Sequence record: NC_031120.1
Direction: 5' to 3' (one strand)
DNA: 64,000 bases
Of this stretch, positions 6,586 through 24,277 are shown in pieces. Every line of letters begins with the position of its first letter. Position 1 is the stretch's first letter. The translations under genes were made by a program, and so were the position numbers. The notes under the pieces were generated by a model. The model saw only the letters and a program-made list of their open reading frames with translations, was not told the origin of the DNA and ran no database searches.

Positions 6586-6947
6586 TGTTGGCGACCCTCG
6601 TGATGGAGTGTGCTAAACGTGGGTTTATCTTACCGAGTGTACGTCAACACCATCATGTCGTGTCTATCCTGCGTGAAAAGTACGGACCGATGTTCGATCA
6701 CAAGCAGGGTAGTTTTAAACGTATCCATGACATGGTACGAGACCATTTATCCGAAGTCATTTACGAACTCCGTACAGAGCTTCGCATGATTCTGGATACC
6801 CACAACCTGACCCAGACCGATTTGTATTACTCGCCTGCCGACCTTGTGCAGTGTCGATACCACATCCGGTCTGTAGAAGATACCACTATTGATGCTTTGG
6901 CATTAAGGACTAGCGATGCAGTTAATTCTCGATTTCTCACTCTCTGA
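6585..6947 (+). CDS. Hypothetical protein
   Basis: TGATG coupling with upstream stop; start moved from 6357. Confidence 0.7.
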   Translation: MLATLVMECAKRGFILPSVRQHHHVVSILREKYGPMFDHKQGSFKRIHDMVRDHLSEVIYELRTELRMILDTHNLTQTDLYYSPADLVQCRYHIRSVEDTTIDALALRTSDAVNSRFLTL

Positions 6948-7461
6948 TTCTCGTGTGGCGTTAGAGAAAGCACTGGGCGGTATGAAAAGTGAGCTGACCT
7001 TCGAAATCGCGGAAGCGGTCTCGCAGTACGAGCTGAATAAGCAGAAGGAAACCGGTAAGCCGCACTACCTGGTGGAAGCAGACGGCGTAACCGAAACCAC
7101 CATCAGTTACATCACCGACCGTTTGCGGAACATCTTGCAACACCCGCACCGGATACCGTTCCTGTGCTACGAATCCATTGAAGAGATTCTGGCGCTTATC
7201 CAATCAGGCTTTGAGTCGGCGTCACTGGCGCTGGATGAAATCTCTACCATCAATCTCAACGAAGTGTATGTCTCTATCCCACGCGAGTGTGATGAGGCAT
7301 CCAACACTTTTGAGATGGTCGGGCTGTCAGAGTTGTTTGACCAGCCGAACATCGACAAGATGGAAGACATCATCCTGAAGACCCAAAAGCAAGTCATCCA
7401 GATTTGCCGTAACGAACTGGCTTACAACCTGGAGTGCATGCAAAAGGCAACCAGCTTATGA
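6916..7461 (+). CDS. Hypothetical acidic protein
   Basis: AAGGA RBS, 181 aa. Confidence 0.75.
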   Translation: MQLILDFSLSDSRVALEKALGGMKSELTFEIAEAVSQYELNKQKETGKPHYLVEADGVTETTISYITDRLRNILQHPHRIPFLCYESIEEILALIQSGFESASLALDEISTINLNEVYVSIPRECDEASNTFEMVGLSELFDQPNIDKMEDIILKTQKQVIQICRNELAYNLECMQKATSL

Positions 7462-7982
7462 AGATTGCGATCAATCTGACCCCTGACGGCGGGGAAGATT
7501 TATGGAAGCAGCTTTTGGGTGATTTGTTCACCCATTACACGCCGGTGGTGGATAAGTTCATTTACAATGGGAAAGATTCCGATGTGAACTATTCCGCCGC
7601 TGTGCTGCTACAAATGATCGACCCACTCTATTCGCCGCTGAGTGATTTGTCAAAGGCGTTACTCGTGTTTGTGTTTGATGAGTCCGACAATCATGCCGGG
7701 ATTATCGAAGCAAACATCGAGCAGTTTACGTTGGATAACCGCGTGCAGGATACACTAGCGGCAATACGTCAAGGTATCTTTAGTAGCCGCGTTCTTATTG
7801 ATGACGAAACACTCGAGGCGTATGATGTTGAGCAACGTCAGGCGTTTTACGAACACGTTGAAAACCGGGTGATGGAACTCATCAAGACGCTGTACGACAA
7901 AGCGTTTGGCGATGTCGATGAAATCACATTCCGATTCTCGAAGGAGAAGAAGCATGAAGGTAGTCTTCCACCTCAGTCATGA
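7458..7982 (+). CDS. Hypothetical acidic protein
   Basis: ATGA overlap with previous stop. Confidence 0.75.
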   Translation: MKIAINLTPDGGEDLWKQLLGDLFTHYTPVVDKFIYNGKDSDVNYSAAVLLQMIDPLYSPLSDLSKALLVFVFDESDNHAGIIEANIEQFTLDNRVQDTLAAIRQGIFSSRVLIDDETLEAYDVEQRQAFYEHVENRVMELIKTLYDKAFGDVDEITFRFSKEKKHEGSLPPQS

Positions 7983-8457
7983 GGAATTCCGTAAGCTGTT
8001 TATCGAGACTCATGACTCGATTGAGTTAAACCTGGCAGCATTACTGACTACCGCGTTACCTGAACAGTATAAGGACGAAGCGGTTTACCTTATGTCTGTT
8101 GAGATGGCGCGGGTGCGGGTTATCATGGAAACGTTGGCGGATAACATCGCGGTCATTGAGTTTGACTCCGAACTGGAAGATGCCAAAGAGAATGGGAAAT
8201 ACTCTGAACTGGTATTCGGTGGTGGCGAAGAACTGATTAAGGCGTTCTATTTCGACGAACGCGAGTATCCGAACATAGCTGACAATCCGGAAGAGACAGA
8301 ACGTTTACGCGCGATTTACGACGCGTTGGACAAAGAGAAGATGAAGAACGAGTGGCCGAAGATTGTGGCAATTGCCATGTCTCGATTGGCGCACGAAGTC
8401 TATCGTCAGATTTGTTCCCACATTCGTACGCATGCGATACGTTTTGTGAAAAAATAA
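7954..8457 (+). CDS. Hypothetical acidic protein
   Basis: AAGGAG RBS before ATG 7954; last gene before terminator. Confidence 0.75.
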   Translation: MKVVFHLSHEEFRKLFIETHDSIELNLAALLTTALPEQYKDEAVYLMSVEMARVRVIMETLADNIAVIEFDSELEDAKENGKYSELVFGGGEELIKAFYFDEREYPNIADNPEETERLRAIYDALDKEKMKNEWPKIVAIAMSRLAHEVYRQICSHIRTHAIRFVKK

Positions 8458-16053: not shown

Positions 16054-17061
16054 ATGTCAAAGAGTGAAATGCAGGCACGAGACGACGTGGTCGAACAGGT
16101 CCAACGTGCGAATGAATATGACGATGTGGAGAAGGCAAAAATCATTGCCCGTATCATGCATAATCATCATTTACGGTTCCACAGTGAAGAGACGTTACTC
16201 AATACATCTCTTCCGCTATCCTTTCGGATAGACGCATTTCTGACAGCAAAACACGACTCCATTTACGGCAACGCGATGGGTCGGCGATTCGGCCTTATTG
16301 CCAGTGAAGGTATTGCCGCCTACGACGTTTGTCGTTTGCCGCAGGTATTTGACGCTGAATCCCGCGAGTGTTACGTTCGCTACCTACGAAGTCTGGGTTG
16401 TGTTCATCAGACCCAGGAACGAAATACGGCGACGGACGGAATCAACCATTACAACATCTATTCGCAGGCGAAGACGCTTATTGGACAGATGGCGAGTAAT
16501 TTTGAATCCGGTCCTGCGGGTGGCTTCGATACTCCACACGGCATGTTCAATACACTGGAGGGTTATTACCATATCCTGCGGGTGATTGACTTTGCTGTGG
16601 CGACCGAAGGCGACGATTATCCGATGTGGCAACACAACAACGAATTATCGCGCGACATCACCATCCTGCAAACCTACAGTTGTCCGTTCCCAGAAGTCGA
16701 TCAGCTGTATATGCTCGACGGGGCGAGCTGCATTCGCGTGGGTCGTGAATTAAAGCGTAAGTTGTACGGTGGCACCAGTTATCGTCCTGGGGCGTTCTCT
16801 GAGCACGCTGAGCGTTGTTTTATGACAGCGGTCGTGCGCAAGTTGCACGTCTTACAGTACGATGGCCGTTGTCTGGGGAACGTGCTGGCTGAGATTGTTC
16901 AGCAGCGGGTGCCGTTAGACCACTACTACGTGATGCAAGGGCGTATCATGCGGCCGAAACACGCGGAGTGGTTGCCTGACCTGTTGACCCGTATTGTTGA
17001 GCACATCGATCCGTACGCAAGTACGTTTGATCCTGATGAGGTCATTAAACTACTGGAGTAG
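16054..17061 (+). CDS. Protein with NADAR-like (T4 gp30.3-type) domain
   Basis: NIYSQAKTLIGQMASNFESGPAGGFDTPHGMFNTLEGYY matches the SNF..F...G.F..LEG signature of phage NADAR proteins. Confidence 0.55.
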   Translation: MSKSEMQARDDVVEQVQRANEYDDVEKAKIIARIMHNHHLRFHSEETLLNTSLPLSFRIDAFLTAKHDSIYGNAMGRRFGLIASEGIAAYDVCRLPQVFDAESRECYVRYLRSLGCVHQTQERNTATDGINHYNIYSQAKTLIGQMASNFESGPAGGFDTPHGMFNTLEGYYHILRVIDFAVATEGDDYPMWQHNNELSRDITILQTYSCPFPEVDQLYMLDGASCIRVGRELKRKLYGGTSYRPGAFSEHAERCFMTAVVRKLHVLQYDGRCLGNVLAEIVQQRVPLDHYYVMQGRIMRPKHAEWLPDLLTRIVEHIDPYASTFDPDEVIKLLE

Positions 17062-17064
17062 TCC

Positions 17065-17724
17065 ATGTCATTTCTGGATGTGTTAGACGAGGTGGAACAG
17101 AAGATGGAGCAGGAGGTGATTAAGGTCGCCCGTGAATCCGTCTCCACCGAGAAAGAGAAAGAATACTGCCTGTGGGTCAAGCCGACTGTTGAAGGTTGGC
17201 GTTGGCTGTACGCGCAGCAGGGTCACTTCCACTTAGACGTACTGATGCCGATTGCGGGCGGACGTCGTCGTATCCGCATTGAAGAAGGGAAAGCGGAGCT
17301 GACACTGAAACGCTGGAGCGAAGAGAACGGTACCGTGGAAGAGAACTCCGATATCGGGTTTGATACCGCGCTGACCTTCTACGCAGACGGCCATGCGGCA
17401 CATCTGGTTCGGCGTATTCGCCTGGAACCGGGAGAGCTGGCGGAGAAAGGCGGTAAGCATTGGGACATTGACGTGTTCTACAGCTACCAGGGACGTCCAA
17501 TGCTGCCCGACCTGCAAGCCTTCAAGGATGTGGTGGAAGCAGCTGAGGCTGGTACCTCGTACGGCGAATGGGTGAAGGTAGAGCTGGAAGTCGAGCGCTA
17601 CGAACTGGAGTCTATCCGGGAATTCATTCCGTTCGAAGTCGAAGCGACTATGGCCAGTCGTCCGAGCAACCAGGAAGACCAAGTGTTCCTGCGTGATTAC
17701 TGGGACAACGTCATCAGTCTGTAA
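17065..17724 (+). CDS. CYTH / triphosphate-tunnel metalloenzyme
   Basis: EKEKE (ExExK-like), RIRIEEGKAELTLKR, EEN, RRIR...WDIDVF, KVELEV motifs in canonical order. Confidence 0.75.
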   Translation: MSFLDVLDEVEQKMEQEVIKVARESVSTEKEKEYCLWVKPTVEGWRWLYAQQGHFHLDVLMPIAGGRRRIRIEEGKAELTLKRWSEENGTVEENSDIGFDTALTFYADGHAAHLVRRIRLEPGELAEKGGKHWDIDVFYSYQGRPMLPDLQAFKDVVEAAEAGTSYGEWVKVELEVERYELESIREFIPFEVEATMASRPSNQEDQVFLRDYWDNVISL

Positions 17725-17729
17725 GCAGT

Positions 17730-17767
17730 GCCCACCCTTCGGGGTGGGTTCTTTCTTTTTCTTTTTT
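17730..17767 (+). terminator. Intrinsic terminator
   Basis: GCCCACCC-TTCG-GGGTGGGT plus long T-tract. Confidence 0.85.
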
Positions 17768-17791
17768 CACGGCATGGGCTGTGTCTATGTA
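17765..17791 (+). promoter_or_regulatory. Putative middle promoter
   Basis: TTTCACGGC-N12-TATGTA upstream of the thyA operon. Confidence 0.55.
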
Positions 17792-17813
17792 TAAACCTCA
17801 AGGAATAATAACC

Positions 17814-18272
17814 ATGAACAACCTGGTATTTGCAGACTCTATCGGTCTCGTGCTCAACGGGAAGCGTATTAAGCACACCTTCGACCATCACTGGAAATCG
17901 TTGATTCAACGCCTGAAAGGTCAGGCACGCATTATCCTGACCAACGAAATCAATCTGAACGCCAACGTAGAAAGCTGCGGGCAGATGTACGCGTTCCATA
18001 TTCCGCGTGAGACCGGCAAAGCCTTGCTGAAACACGGCGAGTTCCAAAGCCGGGTCGCTAGCTGGCGGATGCTGGGTGCATTGTCAGCGATGGCTGAAAA
18101 GACCGTATCGCAATCCATGGTACCCACCACGTTAGGTAACGGGGACATCGTCCTGTTGGTGTACCGTTCAAGCGACGATGCCGAGCTGTCCTTTATGGTC
18201 AGCTACGCCCACGAAACCAAAACTCTGCAAGAGGTGATAGAAGATGCCGGACAAAATACTGCCCACGCGTGA
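17814..18272 (+). CDS. Hypothetical protein
   Basis: AAGGA RBS before ATG 17814. Confidence 0.75.
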   Translation: MNNLVFADSIGLVLNGKRIKHTFDHHWKSLIQRLKGQARIILTNEINLNANVESCGQMYAFHIPRETGKALLKHGEFQSRVASWRMLGALSAMAEKTVSQSMVPTTLGNGDIVLLVYRSSDDAELSFMVSYAHETKTLQEVIEDAGQNTAHA

Positions 18273-18918
18273 AGTGTTTGAAAAGGTGAACGTCTGGAAT
18301 ACCGACGCCGATGTCTACAAGCACGGTTCACTTCATCAGCAGGCGCTGAAAGTTTATCGCTACCTCGGTCAACTGGCCGAGGGTGTCCAGAAGATGGACC
18401 ATCTGGCTATTGCCGCCGCAACTGGCAATTACATGATTAACCTGTACAGCACATTAGCGTTTGTCGGTATCAAACCGGGTGAGTTCGATTGCGCATACGT
18501 CACCGCCCCGTTAGGGCGCGACAACACGCCGGTACATCACATGGTCCATTTGCTCATGACCCGGACGACGCAGGTCATTTCGATGGCTGACCAGTACGAC
18601 AGTCCGGCTGGGAGCAATTTAATGCGCGGGGTGTTACTGGGGCAGCTCAACGACACCATGGCACTGCTCAAAGCCATTGCCAATAAGTCAGGCTTCTACA
18701 TTGAGCGTACTGTGGTGAATGCCGGAAATGTACTGTTGTCCAAAAAGGGTAAGCTCGATGAGTTCGGCCTGTTCTACGCCGACAAACCGGTCGTGGTGGT
18801 TGCGCCAGTGACGCTGACTTCACCGTTCGATGGTCTCGATGATGTGCATCGGGAAAAACTTGGCAAACTTCTCGGGGTTACTCCCGAGCAAATGGGTTAT
18901 CAGGAAAAGGATAAGTAA
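18244..18918 (+). CDS. MazG-like protein lacking the catalytic acidic residues (pseudoenzyme)
   Basis: Ungapped alignment to 21931..22842 core; EE..E/D..D replaced by RY..Q/A..N. Confidence 0.7.
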
Positions 18919-18919
18919 C

Positions 18920-19951
18920 ATGCATCAGTATCACGAACTCTTACAGCAGGTGCTCAGTATCGGCCACGACAAAGCTGACCGTACCGGCACAGGCACTACG
19001 TCCTATCTCGGCGCACAGATGCGCTTCGATCTGCAAGACGGATTCCCGCTGGTCACCACGAAGAAACTCCATCTGCGTTCCATCATTCATGAACTGCTGT
19101 GGTTCCTCAACGGGGACACCAACATCAAGTACCTGAATGACAACGGTGTCTCTATCTGGAACGAGTGGGCGAACGAACTCGGTAACCTGGGGCCGGTTTA
19201 CGGTAAGCAGTGGCGTGAATGGTTAGACACTAAACTCATTGTGGCTGCTGACGTCGCCACAGCTAATCGTCTTGCCAGTAAGGGCTACGTTCTGGTTGGG
19301 CATGTTCCAAATCCTGGCAACGGGCCGACACTTGCCGTTTGGCAGAAAGGCCATGACCAGATTTCTAAAGTTCTTGACCAGCTGCGCAACGATCCTGATA
19401 ACCGCCGTATCATTGTATCGGCCTGGAACGTCGGCGAGCTAGACGATATGGCGTTAGCTCCATGCCATGCTTTCTTCCAGTTTTACACCCATGAGCTGTC
19501 ATTAGAGGAGCGGGTGAATTGGGCAGAAGATAACGATAACGAACTCTGGTCTGATTATGTCCACAACACGCACGTACCCGCACCTAAGCGATTAGAGTGG
19601 TTGGATAAAGCCAACGTGCCAACCCGTATGTTGTCTTGTCAGCTGTATCAGCGTAGTGCGGATATGTTCCTCGGTGTACCGTTCAACATCGCGTCTTACG
19701 CATTGCTGATTCACATGGTGGCGCAACAGGTTAACATGGTACCGGGCGAGTTCGTTTGGACTGGCGGTGACGTCCACATCTACTCCAATCACATGGAACA
19801 GGTAGAAGAACAGCTGTCTCGTAAACCGAAAGCGTTGCCGACGCTGGTTATCAAACGCAAACCGGACAGTATCTTCGATTACAAATTCGAAGACTTCGAA
19901 CTGGTAGGCTACGATCCGCATCCGGCGATTAAAGCCCCGGTGGCTATTTAA
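18920..19951 (+). CDS. thyA: Thymidylate synthase
   Basis: [63 protein letters not shown]; start moved to 18920. Confidence 0.98.
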
Positions 19952-19960
19952 GGAGACCCC

Positions 19961-20422
19961 ATGAGTAACGTGCTGCCGTTCCAACCAAAGAAGTTAGCGG
20001 ATGCTGAGATTTGGATTCCGGGGATTAACGGCACGGAGCCAAAGGTTTTTACGGTACCGCCAACTGATATGTACTGGTGGGCACTGATACTTGACCGTAT
20101 CAGTAGCTTTAGTCGGACGTTCGAAGGTTGTGTTTACTTCTACTCCGATCCCTACGGTTTCATGAACGAATGTTATTCACGTCGCACAAAGTTACTGGAA
20201 ATCGAAGTAACACGGGCTAATCTGACAAACATTCTGAAAGCCATGCCGTACACGTACGTTAGCAGCCTCAGTGGGTTGCTGAACGACGACGATTACGACC
20301 TGGTGCATGACAATGCGCTTATGCATCTGGGCGATGACCTTAACCTGGTTTACGATGTAGGGTTGTTTATTACCCCAACGGACAGACCAGGCACTTTTAA
20401 AATCACTTACGTGGAAATCTAA
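19961..20422 (+). CDS. Hypothetical protein
   Basis: AAGGAG RBS, 153 aa. Confidence 0.8.
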   Translation: MSNVLPFQPKKLADAEIWIPGINGTEPKVFTVPPTDMYWWALILDRISSFSRTFEGCVYFYSDPYGFMNECYSRRTKLLEIEVTRANLTNILKAMPYTYVSSLSGLLNDDDYDLVHDNALMHLGDDLNLVYDVGLFITPTDRPGTFKITYVEI

Positions 20423-21241
20423 ATGAACAAACTCTTTTGGTTCACCGACTGCGCTTACGCTACCCCGATGCAACCGTATTTCTTTGGCGCAGTAGGCGCA
20501 CGCGATATGGCCCACGTTTACGCATTGCTGGGTACCAACAAAATCGATACGTTGGAGCTGGGCGAAACCACGTACGAAGGCCAAATCACTTGTGGTGAAG
20601 CCATCCGTCAGCTCGAGCCGCGCACCTTCAACGATCCACGTAAGACCACCGTGCAGGTTTATCAGGTAAACGAAGGCGTTGACCTGACCGAACGTAAAGC
20701 GTACATCGCTGACCTGCTGCAACGTCAATACGGCTGGACGCCGGAGTCTATCGTGATTCACATGGACCGCTTAGATCTTATTCCGGGTGAGTGTGCCAGC
20801 AGCGGTACGCAGATGTGGCGTGCCTGGGCAAACGTAGAAACCATCGCAGACCCACTGCCGCTGTTCATCACCTTTGAGCACGGGGCGGATGATGTGAACT
20901 TCACGCCAACAGGTGAAACCGTGGAGTACGAGTACAACATCATCGTCGACAAACCACTGACGCCAACATGGCACATGGTTGACCTGCTGGAAGAAGCCGA
21001 ACTGCTGGAACTGTTCCCAGAAGCGGCCTTCGTGTGTCGTAAAGCCACCATGTCCTCTGTCGCCGTAGAAGGCTGGGCGCAAGTGGATGAAGTCTACGGT
21101 AACCACACCGTAACCCTGTGGCTCAATCCTGACTGGAAAGAGCTGCAAGAAAAGGCCGTTGCCCTGATCGTTGCTGAAGCTAAAATGCAGCAGGAAGCAA
21201 ACGATACCGCGGCACTCAACCTCCCTGAAATCAACGCATAA
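20423..21241 (+). CDS. Hypothetical protein
   Basis: Abuts previous stop; N-terminal domain shared with 22868..23704. Confidence 0.8.
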   Translation: MNKLFWFTDCAYATPMQPYFFGAVGARDMAHVYALLGTNKIDTLELGETTYEGQITCGEAIRQLEPRTFNDPRKTTVQVYQVNEGVDLTERKAYIADLLQRQYGWTPESIVIHMDRLDLIPGECASSGTQMWRAWANVETIADPLPLFITFEHGADDVNFTPTGETVEYEYNIIVDKPLTPTWHMVDLLEEAELLELFPEAAFVCRKATMSSVAVEGWAQVDEVYGNHTVTLWLNPDWKELQEKAVALIVAEAKMQQEANDTAALNLPEINA

Positions 21242-21251
21242 GGTGTATACA

Positions 21252-21704
21252 GTGTCTAAGACCCAAATCAATTACGATCTTGTGGTGAAAGAGCTGTCCA
21301 AAGGACTCATCGCTTTGGACTCTGACGTGGCTAAGCAATGTAACATGTTGCCACATATCGCGCTCAGTGAGTTCCGTACTATTCGCTATGGCGCGGGTCG
21401 TCAGAAAGGCGTGACGGAGTTTGTGACCAAGTTGGCCGGGGAACATCAAGGGCCGGTTTTAGTCTTAACTCACGCGACGCCGTTACGCGATGAGTTCATA
21501 TTCCGGGTCGAAGGTAACTATCCCGGTAAAAACAATATCACATCGTTAAGTGGGTATTTCCCGGAGAATTGGCGAGCTGAGAAATTTAGTCTCGTCGTTA
21601 TCGATGAAGCTGGTTTCTTCTTTAAGAAGTTCGGCTACGACAAAATGTATCGCAGCCTGGCAACCCAGACGACCGACGATGTGGTCATTCATTTAATTAA
21701 TTGA
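21252..21704 (+). CDS. Small single-domain P-loop NTPase-like protein
   Basis: GTG start with AAGGTG RBS; YGAGRQKGVT (RQxGKT-like, Lys to Val) and LVVIDEA Walker B. Confidence 0.6.
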   Translation: MSKTQINYDLVVKELSKGLIALDSDVAKQCNMLPHIALSEFRTIRYGAGRQKGVTEFVTKLAGEHQGPVLVLTHATPLRDEFIFRVEGNYPGKNNITSLSGYFPENWRAEKFSLVVIDEAGFFFKKFGYDKMYRSLATQTTDDVVIHLIN

Positions 21705-21711
21705 GGAAGTT

Positions 21712-21867
21712 ATGGAAAAGCAAGTTATTGAAAAACAAGACACCAATACCCTGGACGATATGTTTGGTGGCGATATCCCGGGCTTAGATCCGGATGTCGG
21801 TGTAGAGGGTGGCGTTGACCCGTCGAAAGAAGACGACAACTGCACCGGCGGTGCTTGCAAAATTTAA
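21712..21867 (+). CDS. 51-aa acidic peptide ending in an NrdA-type redox tail (DDNCTGGACKI)
   Basis: Below the ORF-track cutoff; GAGGA RBS, ATG 21712, TAA 21865-67, then a terminator. Translation MEKQVIEKQDTNTLDDMFGGDIPGLDPDVGVEGGVDPSKEDDNCTGGACKI. Confidence 0.85.
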   Translation: MEKQVIEKQDTNTLDDMFGGDIPGLDPDVGVEGGVDPSKEDDNCTGGACKI

Positions 21868-21874
21868 CGTATCT

Positions 21875-21911
21875 GGGTGTCCTTATGGACACCCCCTTTC
21901 TCTTTTTTTTA
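21875..21911 (+). terminator. Intrinsic terminator
   Basis: GGGTGTCC-TTAT-GGACACCC plus T-rich tail. Confidence 0.8.
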
Positions 21912-21930
21912 TTTCAAGGATTAATAAATC

Positions 21931-22842
21931 ATGGGCGAACAATTTGCCATTCAAATTCCGTACAACATCATCATTAACCCGAACGATCACTTAGAACAAG
22001 TTAACAAACTGTTGGCCGGGTTCTGTAAACGGCAGTTTGTCAAAGAGTGGGCGTTTGAAGTGCTGTACGCATTGAGCATTAACAGCGAAACTGGCGCAAC
22101 CCGCGTGGAGGGTAAAGTGAAGACCGAAGACGGTCGTCTGGAAATTAATGACTTTGAGATGCCGTGGGTGTTGTCCGGGGTTGAATTCAAAGGCACCGTT
22201 AACCATCCCCGCTACATCCGTCTGTTCCAGGTGAAGCAATGTATTGAAAACGTACTGGGCTGGTCACAGGCACGCGGTATTCTCGAGAACGGTAAATGGA
22301 CTACGCAGGTTACCAAATTCTACGAAGAAGACGGTGAAGCGGCAACCGGTATCAGCAAGACCAAAAAGCGTCTGATCATGGACGGTATTGGTGACGCGTT
22401 GGTCGTATTGGTTAACGTACTGGCGCTGACCAAGTTTGGTGCAGAAACAATTAACGACATGCTGGTCGAAGCGCGTGCGCGTATTGAGAACAACGTGCCG
22501 TTCGGTGACGCTCACCGCCTGTTCCACAAAATGCGTTTGGAATTTACCCAGGCGAACGATGCCTTCTATCAGGGTGAAGACTGGCGTATGCGCAACGATG
22601 TCTCTGTAGAAGATCAGCCGGAACTACCCGCTATCTTCTTGATGGATGTGGAAGCCCGTGTGGTCAACGGCCTGTGGTATATGGAAGCCTTGGCGCGTGC
22701 TTACGAAGTCACGATCGAGCAGTGCTTCTCATTGGCCTGGGACGAAATCAAAGACCGTCGTGGCTTCCTGAACGCTGATGGCATCTTCGTCAAAGAAGCT
22801 GATATGACCGAAGAACAGAAAGCCGCACAGGCTACCGCTTAA
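21931..22842 (+). CDS. mazG: MazG-like NTP pyrophosphohydrolase with N-terminal extension
   Basis: W..ARGI...Q..K..EEDGE...G...I.DGIGD.LVVL core and C-terminal AWDEIKDRRG...GIFVKE typical of phage MazG-like proteins. Confidence 0.8.
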   Translation: MGEQFAIQIPYNIIINPNDHLEQVNKLLAGFCKRQFVKEWAFEVLYALSINSETGATRVEGKVKTEDGRLEINDFEMPWVLSGVEFKGTVNHPRYIRLFQVKQCIENVLGWSQARGILENGKWTTQVTKFYEEDGEAATGISKTKKRLIMDGIGDALVVLVNVLALTKFGAETINDMLVEARARIENNVPFGDAHRLFHKMRLEFTQANDAFYQGEDWRMRNDVSVEDQPELPAIFLMDVEARVVNGLWYMEALARAYEVTIEQCFSLAWDEIKDRRGFLNADGIFVKEADMTEEQKAAQATA

Positions 22843-22867
22843 CCCCTAACTCTTGCAGGAGAGTAAC

Positions 22868-23704
22868 ATGAATCTATTCCTCGTAACGGACGAGTTCAAT
22901 AAATCCGCCATGGAGACCTCGTTCAGAGCAACCGTGATTGCAAAGGATGAAAACTCTGCACGCTGGTTGGTGAGTCAACGCAGTTCCACATTCCAGATTA
23001 AGGAAGTGGCTGCCGCGGCTGCATTTTGCATTGCCGAAATTGCACACGAGGAAGAAGGTGTCTTAACCATCGTCCACAGTAGCGGGGCACAACTGCTGTC
23101 CCGTTCACAGTTCAAACAACCGGACGTGTCCGAAGACATCTTCTACGAAATCGATATTCTGGAAGCGGCAAAGCACGAGATTCCGAATCTGCCAAACACA
23201 GAAGTCGTATGGTTCGCGGTAAAGAACCAGCCGAAGTATCTGATGCGCCGCACCGTACTGCGTACCGATACGCCTAATCCTACTGTGCCAGGAAAATACA
23301 GCCAGCTGTATGTCGCGCAACAGTTCTTCCTGAATGACCAGCCAGCCAAATGGCCGTGGCGTTATACGCCAGCGGGACGTGAGTATAAAACGCAGTTCTA
23401 CGATCTGACTCACGCCAGTATTCTGGAAATCCGTGCGTCTATTCTGCGTAACGCAAATACGTTGCCAGACGGACTGGTAGCTGAAGAGCTGCTGAAAAAG
23501 CTGTGGACGTTTGTACGGACAGAAAAAGGGGAAGGGGCGGTCGAAATCAAAGACCTGCAATTCTACCCGGGCCAAAAACTTTACTGGCATCAAACCGAAG
23601 CCTGTGAATGGGCCATGACCTTGCCACAGATTATCGCCGGTGAGTTATGCCTTAATGGTGAGCTTGCCAGCGATATTCCGAACACCAACTGTCAAACTTT
23701 CTAA
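22868..23704 (+). CDS. Hypothetical protein
   Basis: GGAGAG RBS before ATG 22868. Confidence 0.8.
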   Translation: MNLFLVTDEFNKSAMETSFRATVIAKDENSARWLVSQRSSTFQIKEVAAAAAFCIAEIAHEEEGVLTIVHSSGAQLLSRSQFKQPDVSEDIFYEIDILEAAKHEIPNLPNTEVVWFAVKNQPKYLMRRTVLRTDTPNPTVPGKYSQLYVAQQFFLNDQPAKWPWRYTPAGREYKTQFYDLTHASILEIRASILRNANTLPDGLVAEELLKKLWTFVRTEKGEGAVEIKDLQFYPGQKLYWHQTEACEWAMTLPQIIAGELCLNGELASDIPNTNCQTF

Positions 23705-24235: not shown

Positions 24236-24277
24236 AGGTACCACCTACCCGCTGGGGTAGGTGGCCTTTCTTTTTTT
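24236..24277. terminator. Bidirectional intrinsic terminator
   Basis: CCACCTACCC/GGGTAGGTGG stem flanked by A- and T-tracts between convergent genes. Confidence 0.85.

Follow-up and report, generated by a model that had tools for sequence, protein, structure and literature searches.

In bacteriophage T4, the dCTPase-dUTPase gp56, a member of the MazG superfamily, and thymidylate synthase have been reported to associate in a complex that synthesizes deoxynucleoside triphosphates (dNTPs). In MazG of Mycobacterium tuberculosis, four acidic residues of an EEXX(E/D)-type site hold Mg2+ and their mutation lowers activity, three of the four single alanine mutants still retaining 20-40%; MazG enzymes act as dimers (PMC10014863). 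An active MazG-like enzyme of a phage, Atd1, has been reported to counter TIR-STING toxicity by depleting guanosine tetra- and pentaphosphate ((p)ppGpp) (bioRxiv 10.1101/2022.06.09.495361). Here, we analyze gp241 (YP_009292314.1, labeled "hypothetical" in the record), a MazG-like protein without such acids, which is encoded by Erwinia phage vB_EamM_Caitlin, an SPN3US-like jumbo phage of the genus Machinavirus that infects the fire-blight bacterium. The window, i.e., the whole stretch of DNA that was analyzed, comprises the terminal 64 kb of the 241,147-bp genome (NC_031120.1), to which its bases 17000-23000 are 100% identical. Within it, gp241 extends from an ATG at 18244 to a stop codon at 18916-18918, and a gap of a single base separates it from thyA (gp242), the gene for thymidylate synthase (ThyA). 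These coordinates, the product of 224 amino acids (aa) and the placement directly before thyA, all part of an original prediction made from the sequence alone, agree with sequence and annotation. We tentatively favor the reading that gp241 descends from a phage MazG-like nucleoside triphosphate (NTP) pyrophosphohydrolase, the closest type being that of gp247 of the same phage, that it no longer hydrolyzes, and that it serves the thymidylate module.

The prediction had started from an ungapped alignment of gp241 with gp247, the product of the gene at 21931. BLASTP returned the same register for gp241 residues 4-62 and gp247 residues 97-155 (E 8e-4 in this single comparison). The further C-terminal blocks said to align were recovered by hhalign with orthologue profiles of 19 gp241-family members and 13 gp247 orthologues (including gp247), which matched gp241 residues 7-183 to gp247 residues 100-292 over 177 columns (probability 97.2%, E 2.8e-11). 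The likeness therefore extends over the entire domain with its C-terminal blocks and, at the level of sequence, exceeds chance. Among the PHROG families, gp241 residues 1-223 matched positions 1-242 of the 299-position profile phrog_10269, a family of unknown function, at E 8.7e-84, the unmatched end of the profile being a C-terminal domain discussed below. gp241 also matched three MazG PHROGs, the best being phrog_7855, the gp247 type, with 1.1e-8, while phrog_715 gave 8e-6; the corresponding values for gp247 were 7.7e-130 and 2.7e-24. When the gp241-family profile was compared with 1.84 billion representative proteins, the 19 matches below 1e-10 were the family itself, followed by MazG-like pyrophosphatases as assigned by PHROG, four of which pass the cut-off of PF03819.

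The AlphaFold 2 (AF2) model of gp241 (predicted local distance difference test, pLDDT, 80.6; predicted template modeling score, pTM, 0.73) consists of helices in residues 8-165, a beta hairpin in 169-179 and a tail that is poorly defined from residue 182. A MazG-like fold is indicated by matches in BFVD to models of viral NTP pyrophosphatases (NTP-PPases), with E 5e-8 to 1e-5 and template modeling (TM) scores of 0.55-0.69. The top match outside the gp241 family was the gp247 orthologue of phage Wellington (E 5e-8); several of the others (1e-6 to 1e-5) are named NTP-PPase-like or pyrophosphohydrolase, and models named dUTPase followed at 5e-3 to 1e-2. In the PDB, Foldseek searches with the model gave TM scores above 0.4 only for 5myf and 5mil (TMt 0.56, probability 0.95, weak E of 0.26-0.30) and no match with E below 1e-3, the remainder being mostly generic helical bundles with TM around 0.2. 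Sequence searches of the PDB with gp241, gp247 and their profiles yielded nothing except designed helical repeats. gp241 matched neither the Pfam MazG and dUTPase families (PF03819, PF12643, PF08761) at E up to 1 nor any NCBIfam model, and gp247 had no informative match in Pfam or NCBIfam; a DUF1697 match to gp241 (21.6 bits, cut-off 24.4) was taken as noise. By descent and predicted fold, gp241 is a member of the all-alpha NTP pyrophosphohydrolase (MazG-like) superfamily, and PHROG and BFVD agree on the gp247 type as its nearest active relative.

To compare the metal-binding positions, a joint alignment of 26 distinct gp241-family members, 13 gp247 orthologues and six other MazG-like proteins was used. 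The acids E132, E133, E136, D151 and D155 of gp247, located within two motif helices, are invariant in all 13 orthologues, and the other MazG-like proteins keep four of the five in 6/6 cases and the E132 equivalent in 5/6. In gp241 the five positions are occupied by R39, Y40, Q43, A58 and N62, the very replacements that had been read from the sequence. Within the family, the E132 equivalent is R in 23 members and V, M or G in one each, the E133 equivalent is Y, H, T, C, M or S, and the D151 equivalent is A (16), S (7) or K (3), so that none of the 26 carries an acid at these three sites. The E136 equivalent is E or D in 13 members and another residue in 13, and at the D155 equivalent two members have E, the rest N, K, R, Q, S, G or V. 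The W, Q, K and G residues regarded as structural are retained; in all, gp241 has W18, Q33, K36, Y38, G42, G47, K50, G61, G169, G175 and F177 in common with the active enzymes. The designation of gp241 as catalytically dead thus stands insofar as all five acids are gone in Caitlin and acids are absent or rare at four of the five positions across the family; inactivity itself is an inference from sequence. As all five acids are missing, whereas the M. tuberculosis mutants with residual activity each lack a single one, hydrolytic capacity has very probably been lost.

As the family has gained invariant polar residues of its own, it looks remodeled and not simply dead. R39 (23/26), E46 (24/26), Q49 (22/26), R155 and N159 (both 26/26) are specific to the gp241 family and have no counterpart in the active proteins. 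On the helix of the first acid motif, R39, E46 and K50 are spaced by 3-4 or 7 residues and should for this reason face the former active site. Likely pocket-lining residues common to gp241 and the active proteins are Q33, K36, Y38 and K50. Of the last-helix residues D271, E272, K274, R276 and K288 of gp247, only the R276 site stays basic in the gp241 family (K in 18/26), and the remaining sites that are invariant in gp247 are variable or hydrophobic. The domain carries a net charge of +1 in gp241 versus -10 in gp247. Both proteins possess a helical insert, in which H98 and H102 of gp241 align with H195 and H199 of gp247.

The gp241 family is under purifying selection as strong as that on thyA. 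The ratio of nonsynonymous to synonymous substitution rates (dN/dS) was determined according to Nei-Gojobori for genome pairs with unsaturated synonymous sites, distant pairs being saturated and giving no estimate. It amounted to 0.02-0.12 for the MazG-like domain of the gp241 family, 0.075-0.14 for thyA in the same pairs, 0.02-0.28 for mazG of the gp247 type and 0.17-0.34 for the C-terminal domain. None of the relatives has a disrupted reading frame, and many columns are invariant among family proteins that are just 17-47% identical to gp241. The gene is accordingly retained and not decaying, as had been proposed.

The position directly before thyA was found in 14/14 related phage genomes, with stop and start abutting or overlapping, and a gp247-type gene follows a few kb downstream in these genomes. 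They include ChrisDB, pEa_SNUABM_4-type phages, Machina, Huxley, JN03, EC001, SPN3US, SPAsTU, phiEaH2 and Kwan and cover the genera Machinavirus, Seoulvirus, Erskinevirus and Wellingtonvirus. The same adjacency occurs in assembly and metagenomic contigs, giving more than 20 contexts in all with no exception. In the numbering of SPN3US, the acid-less protein is gp228, ThyA gp229 and MazG gp235. Outside the SPN3US-like clade, the acid-less gene was not found. In the protein search, the SPN3US-type allele turned up on dozens of contigs of about 240 kb that are filed as assemblies of Salmonella enterica or Escherichia coli; sequencing data of bacterial isolates therefore commonly contain genomes of jumbo phages.

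Most gp241 orthologues have 286-328 aa, about 100 of which make up an additional C-terminal domain. The latter forms a gene of its own between the MazG-like gene and thyA in loci L016-L019, occurs as an additional copy behind the full-length gene in locus L020, and is absent from Wellingtonvirus (191 aa), from the Caitlin relative P0002 (186 aa, with thyA directly after) and from Caitlin. Residues 184-224 of Caitlin gp241 correspond to the linker in the full-length proteins nearest to it (P0003, P0082), and tblastn did not find the domain elsewhere in Caitlin. It has no Pfam family, and its AF2 model (pLDDT 81) has no meaningful PDB neighbor. When present, it is always located between the MazG-like domain and thyA, and hence represents a movable module. 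As it can be fused, split, duplicated or absent, the constant part of the family is the acid-less MazG-like domain.

The locus is also mosaic. SPN3US shares 95-100% DNA identity with EC001 or JN03 around the locus and 53-59% inside the acid-less gene. Between Machina and Huxley, most differences are in the C-terminal domain and thyA, and between ChrisDB and pEa_SNUABM_9 in the C-terminal domain, thyA and mazG. Such divergence islands, with 52-77% identity in otherwise 90-100% identical genomes, were located at the acid-less gene, thyA and mazG (L006 4741-5610 versus L009 and L004; L003 5501-6500 versus L010; L002 5401-6600 and 9301-10228 versus L015). Synonymous sites are saturated within them, and they therefore represent replaced alleles and not locally accelerated evolution. 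In one relative (L016; contig ABCXJB010000007.1, GCA_020289985.1), a group I intron at 7584-7816 (RF00028, 64.8 bits, gathering score 50) splits thyA into open reading frames (ORFs) 6856-7614 and 7855-8163, whereas thyA of Caitlin is uninterrupted. Since thyA and mazG show the same islands and a relative's thyA holds this intron, plain recombination suffices as an explanation, and the case for an arms race behind the islands is weakened.

The original prediction had offered three candidate roles for gp241, namely a sponge that binds nucleotides or alarmones, a regulatory subunit of the active MazG, or a partner of ThyA. According to the favored reading, gp241 would be unable to carry out Mg-dependent triphosphate hydrolysis, and its remodeled pocket would bind an anionic ligand without metal, which could be a deoxynucleotide such as deoxyuridine or deoxythymidine monophosphate (dUMP, dTMP) or a folate-type compound; alternatively, the pocket may be closed by an R39-E46 pair. 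The protein would be co-made with ThyA from one transcript. The hairpins upstream of gp240 and between gp246 and gp247 (Table 1), which are consensus matches only, suggest a single unit of gp240-gp246, to which gp241 and thyA belong, and the start of another at gp247. gp241 may then assist the thymidylate-synthesis module of the phage by binding, scaffolding or regulation. In favor of this reading are the loss of the acids together with the gain of family-specific residues, the strong purifying selection, the constant adjacency to thyA, the bracketing hairpins and the reported association of gp56 with thymidylate synthase in T4. In most relatives, the C-terminal domain would join the same module; Caitlin would manage without it.

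Several findings weigh against such a role. Cronobacter phage CR5, a member of a different genus, possesses both thyA and a MazG of the gp247 type, yet the gene upstream of its thyA is from another family; ThyA can therefore do without the acid-less protein, which is not a general companion of ThyA. Tight packing and overlaps are general in the Caitlin genome, gp240 and gp241 overlapping as well, and the coupling to thyA is therefore weak evidence. In addition, the SPN3US allele, the most divergent one, lacks R39, E46, Q49 and K50. The chief weakness is that between SPN3US and EC001/JN03 the nonsynonymous divergence (dN) is 0.45 for the gene and 0.03 for ThyA, as divergent alleles beside a near-identical ThyA argue against a tightly co-evolving interface.

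A broader role, which we regard as rather unlikely, would be that of a metal-free ligand binder in a three-part cassette of acid-less MazG, C-terminal domain and ThyA that is exchanged among phages, gp241 acting either as a dedicated subunit of the viral ThyA, for regulation or the handling of nucleotides, or as a sponge that takes up a nucleotide signal. In our searches, neither role was described for the MazG fold, and the literature yielded no description of the gp241/SPN3US gp228 gene. Similarly doubtful is a function as a counter-defence binder that sequesters or masks a signal or substrate of the nucleotide type (an alarmone, a cyclic oligonucleotide or a dNTP-related compound) or, in a variant of this explanation, as a decoy for a host factor recognizing MazG or dUTPase-type proteins. 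It would fit with the retention of pocket-lining residues in a less acidic domain that has lost the catalytic acids, with the allele replacement in otherwise 95-100% identical genomes, with the precedent of Atd1, and with the best PDB matches, 5myf and 5mil, having been deposited in studies of signaling and of pathogenicity-island transfer. However, the gene is fixed, syntenic and core to the clade and lies in a nucleotide-metabolism block, whereas anti-defence genes are usually sporadic; the islands are shared by thyA and mazG, for which the intron points to plain recombination, and neither PADLOC nor Pfam provides a link. Sponges of the Tad1, Tad2 and Acb2 type were not among the matches in the general Pfam, PHROG, PDB and BFVD searches, which did not include a dedicated anti-defence library.

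That gp241 is a regulatory or dominant-negative partner of gp247, tuning pyrophosphohydrolase activity or specificity in mixed oligomers, is unlikely, although the gp247 type is its nearest active relative (best MazG PHROG and best BFVD match outside the family), both proteins contain the helical insert with the two aligned histidines, every clade member examined has both genes, and MazG enzymes are dimeric (PMC10014863). A terminator-like hairpin lies in the 3 kb that separate the two genes, the islands of divergence in one are independent of those in the other, gp247 has an additional N-terminal domain, and gp241 is always found beside thyA and not mazG. We likewise consider it unlikely that gp241 is still an enzyme with changed chemistry, in which R39, E46, R155 and N159 together with K36 and K50 form a metal-independent or reorganized nucleotide site. 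The strong constraint on invariant polar residues, the acid kept at the E136 equivalent in half of the family and the partial activity of single acid-to-alanine MazG mutants (PMC10014863) would be in line with this; yet Caitlin gp241 retains 0/5 acids, and the C-terminal helix positions invariant in gp247 are gone save for the lysine at the R276 equivalent. To our knowledge, no member of the superfamily works without the acids (see also PMC10014863). Finally, gp241 might be a decaying remnant kept only for the ribosome-binding site of thyA at its 3' end, as the Caitlin copy is shortened and its last codons overlap an AAGGA ahead of thyA. This is highly improbable, being already contradicted by the low dN/dS, the intact frame in all relatives and the many invariant columns across diverged proteins.

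Table 1. Positions of gp241, its parts and neighboring features in the 64-kb window (nt, nucleotides).
Feature	Position (nt)	Strand	Basis or remarks
gp241, acid-less MazG-like protein, 224 aa, phrog_10269	18244-18918	+	ORF, annotation, PHROG
Shine-Dalgarno-like GAGGTGA, 6 nt ahead of the gp241 ATG	18231-18237	+	Read from sequence
Predicted MazG-like (all-alpha NTP-pyrophosphatase fold) core, gp241 residues 7-183	18262-18792	+	hhalign, AF2, BFVD
Remodeled first motif helix, gp241 residues 36-50	18349-18393	+	Column counts: 26 family members, 13 gp247 orthologues, 6 other MazG-like proteins
Remodeled second motif, gp241 residues 58-62	18415-18429	+	A58 and N62 at the D, D sites; G61 common
Last helix and beta hairpin, gp241 residues 153-179	18700-18780	+	R155, N159 family-invariant; G169, G175, F177 common with active proteins
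Low-confidence tail, gp241 residues 184-224	18793-18915	+	pLDDT 38-64; aligns with inter-domain linker of relatives
thyA (gp242), thymidylate synthase	18920-19951	+	PF00303 4e-116; NCBIfam equivalog NF002499; annotation
gp240, phrog_9744, unknown	17814-18272	+	Overlaps gp241 start by 29 nt; syntenic upstream neighbor
gp247, predicted-active MazG-like pyrophosphohydrolase	21931-22842	+	PHROG; acids invariant; annotated mazG nucleotide pyrophosphohydrolase
MazG-like domain of gp247, residues 100-292	22228-22806	+	
Acid motifs of gp247	22324-22338, 22381-22395	+	
Terminator-like hairpin upstream of gp240, 8-bp stem, 6 GC, T-rich tail	17730-17749	+	Consensus scan only
Terminator-like hairpin between gp246 and gp247	21875-21894	+	Consensus scan only

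A further strong terminator-like hairpin was located on the + strand at 24241-24264, and all three are situated at gene-block boundaries and have stems of 8-10 bp and T-rich tails; in the region, 17 terminator-like sites were counted versus 8.6 in shuffled sequence, i.e., a twofold difference. A scan of the window with Rfam gave no match, no tRNAs were found, and PADLOC returned no match. That gp240 might be a split-off counterpart of the N-terminal domain of gp247 was rejected (hhalign probability 0.24%, BLASTP E 0.52). ThyA of Caitlin scored 438 bits against the thymidylate synthase equivalog NF002499 (cut-off 405 bits). It is 343 aa long, compared with 266 positions of the Pfam model, and NCBIfam matches it in three stretches, indicating that it carries internal insertions; among relatives, the length of thyA ranges from 1008 to 1224 nt. 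In SPN3US, gp100 has been called a predicted thymidylate synthase (PMC5694885), whereas the thyA beside the acid-less gene encodes gp229. The SPN3US clade may thus encode two proteins of the thymidylate-synthase type, the gp100 locus lying outside the window. The gp247-type MazG of Wellingtonvirus has 444-460 aa (L014 7446-8828, L013 8122-9456) and, unlike that of the other genera, is extended by about 150 aa at its C-terminus.

Pseudoenzymes that keep a pocket and lack catalysis are a recurring origin of regulators and binders, and small-molecule binders of phages have proved to be counter-defence tools. The family phrog_10269 (SPN3US gp228) is labeled hypothetical everywhere, yet it is conserved in well-studied jumbo phages including the genetic model SPN3US. 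Our analysis provides it with an evolutionary origin, defined lost and gained residues and a fixed genomic partner, thyA, which turns it into a testable gene. If binding of a nucleotide or of ThyA is true, gp241 would be a non-catalytic member of the MazG superfamily and a new accessory of viral dTMP synthesis; if not, the family would still be a clean case of a constrained pseudoenzyme.

Among known systems, gp241 most closely resembles the gp247 type (phrog_7855), which occurs in the same genomes and with which it shares the fold, the domain layout, the helical insert that separates the last helix from the motif helices, and common W, Q, K, Y, G, G, K and G...G.F positions. The gp247 type differs by its N-terminal domain, the acids, the residues of the C-terminal helix and the net charge. 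Canonical MazG (PF03819, e.g., the M. tuberculosis enzyme) is tied to gp241 via intermediate sequences, and gp241 lacks its EEXX(E/D)-type Mg site. The dimeric dUTPases of staphylococcal phages (5myf, 5mil) are likewise of the all-alpha NTP-PPase type and, according to the titles of the entries, have a non-catalytic signaling role; unlike gp241, they are active enzymes with intact acids. The T4 protein was not among the matches of the searches run, none of which was aimed at gp56 homology. Two further parallels are drawn by description: Atd1, a MazG-like protein of a phage, does more than house-cleaning but works by hydrolysis of ppGpp, for which gp241 lacks the catalytic acids, and T4 gp56 is a MazG-superfamily protein tied to thymidylate synthase in a large phage, as may be the case for gp241, but is itself an active enzyme.

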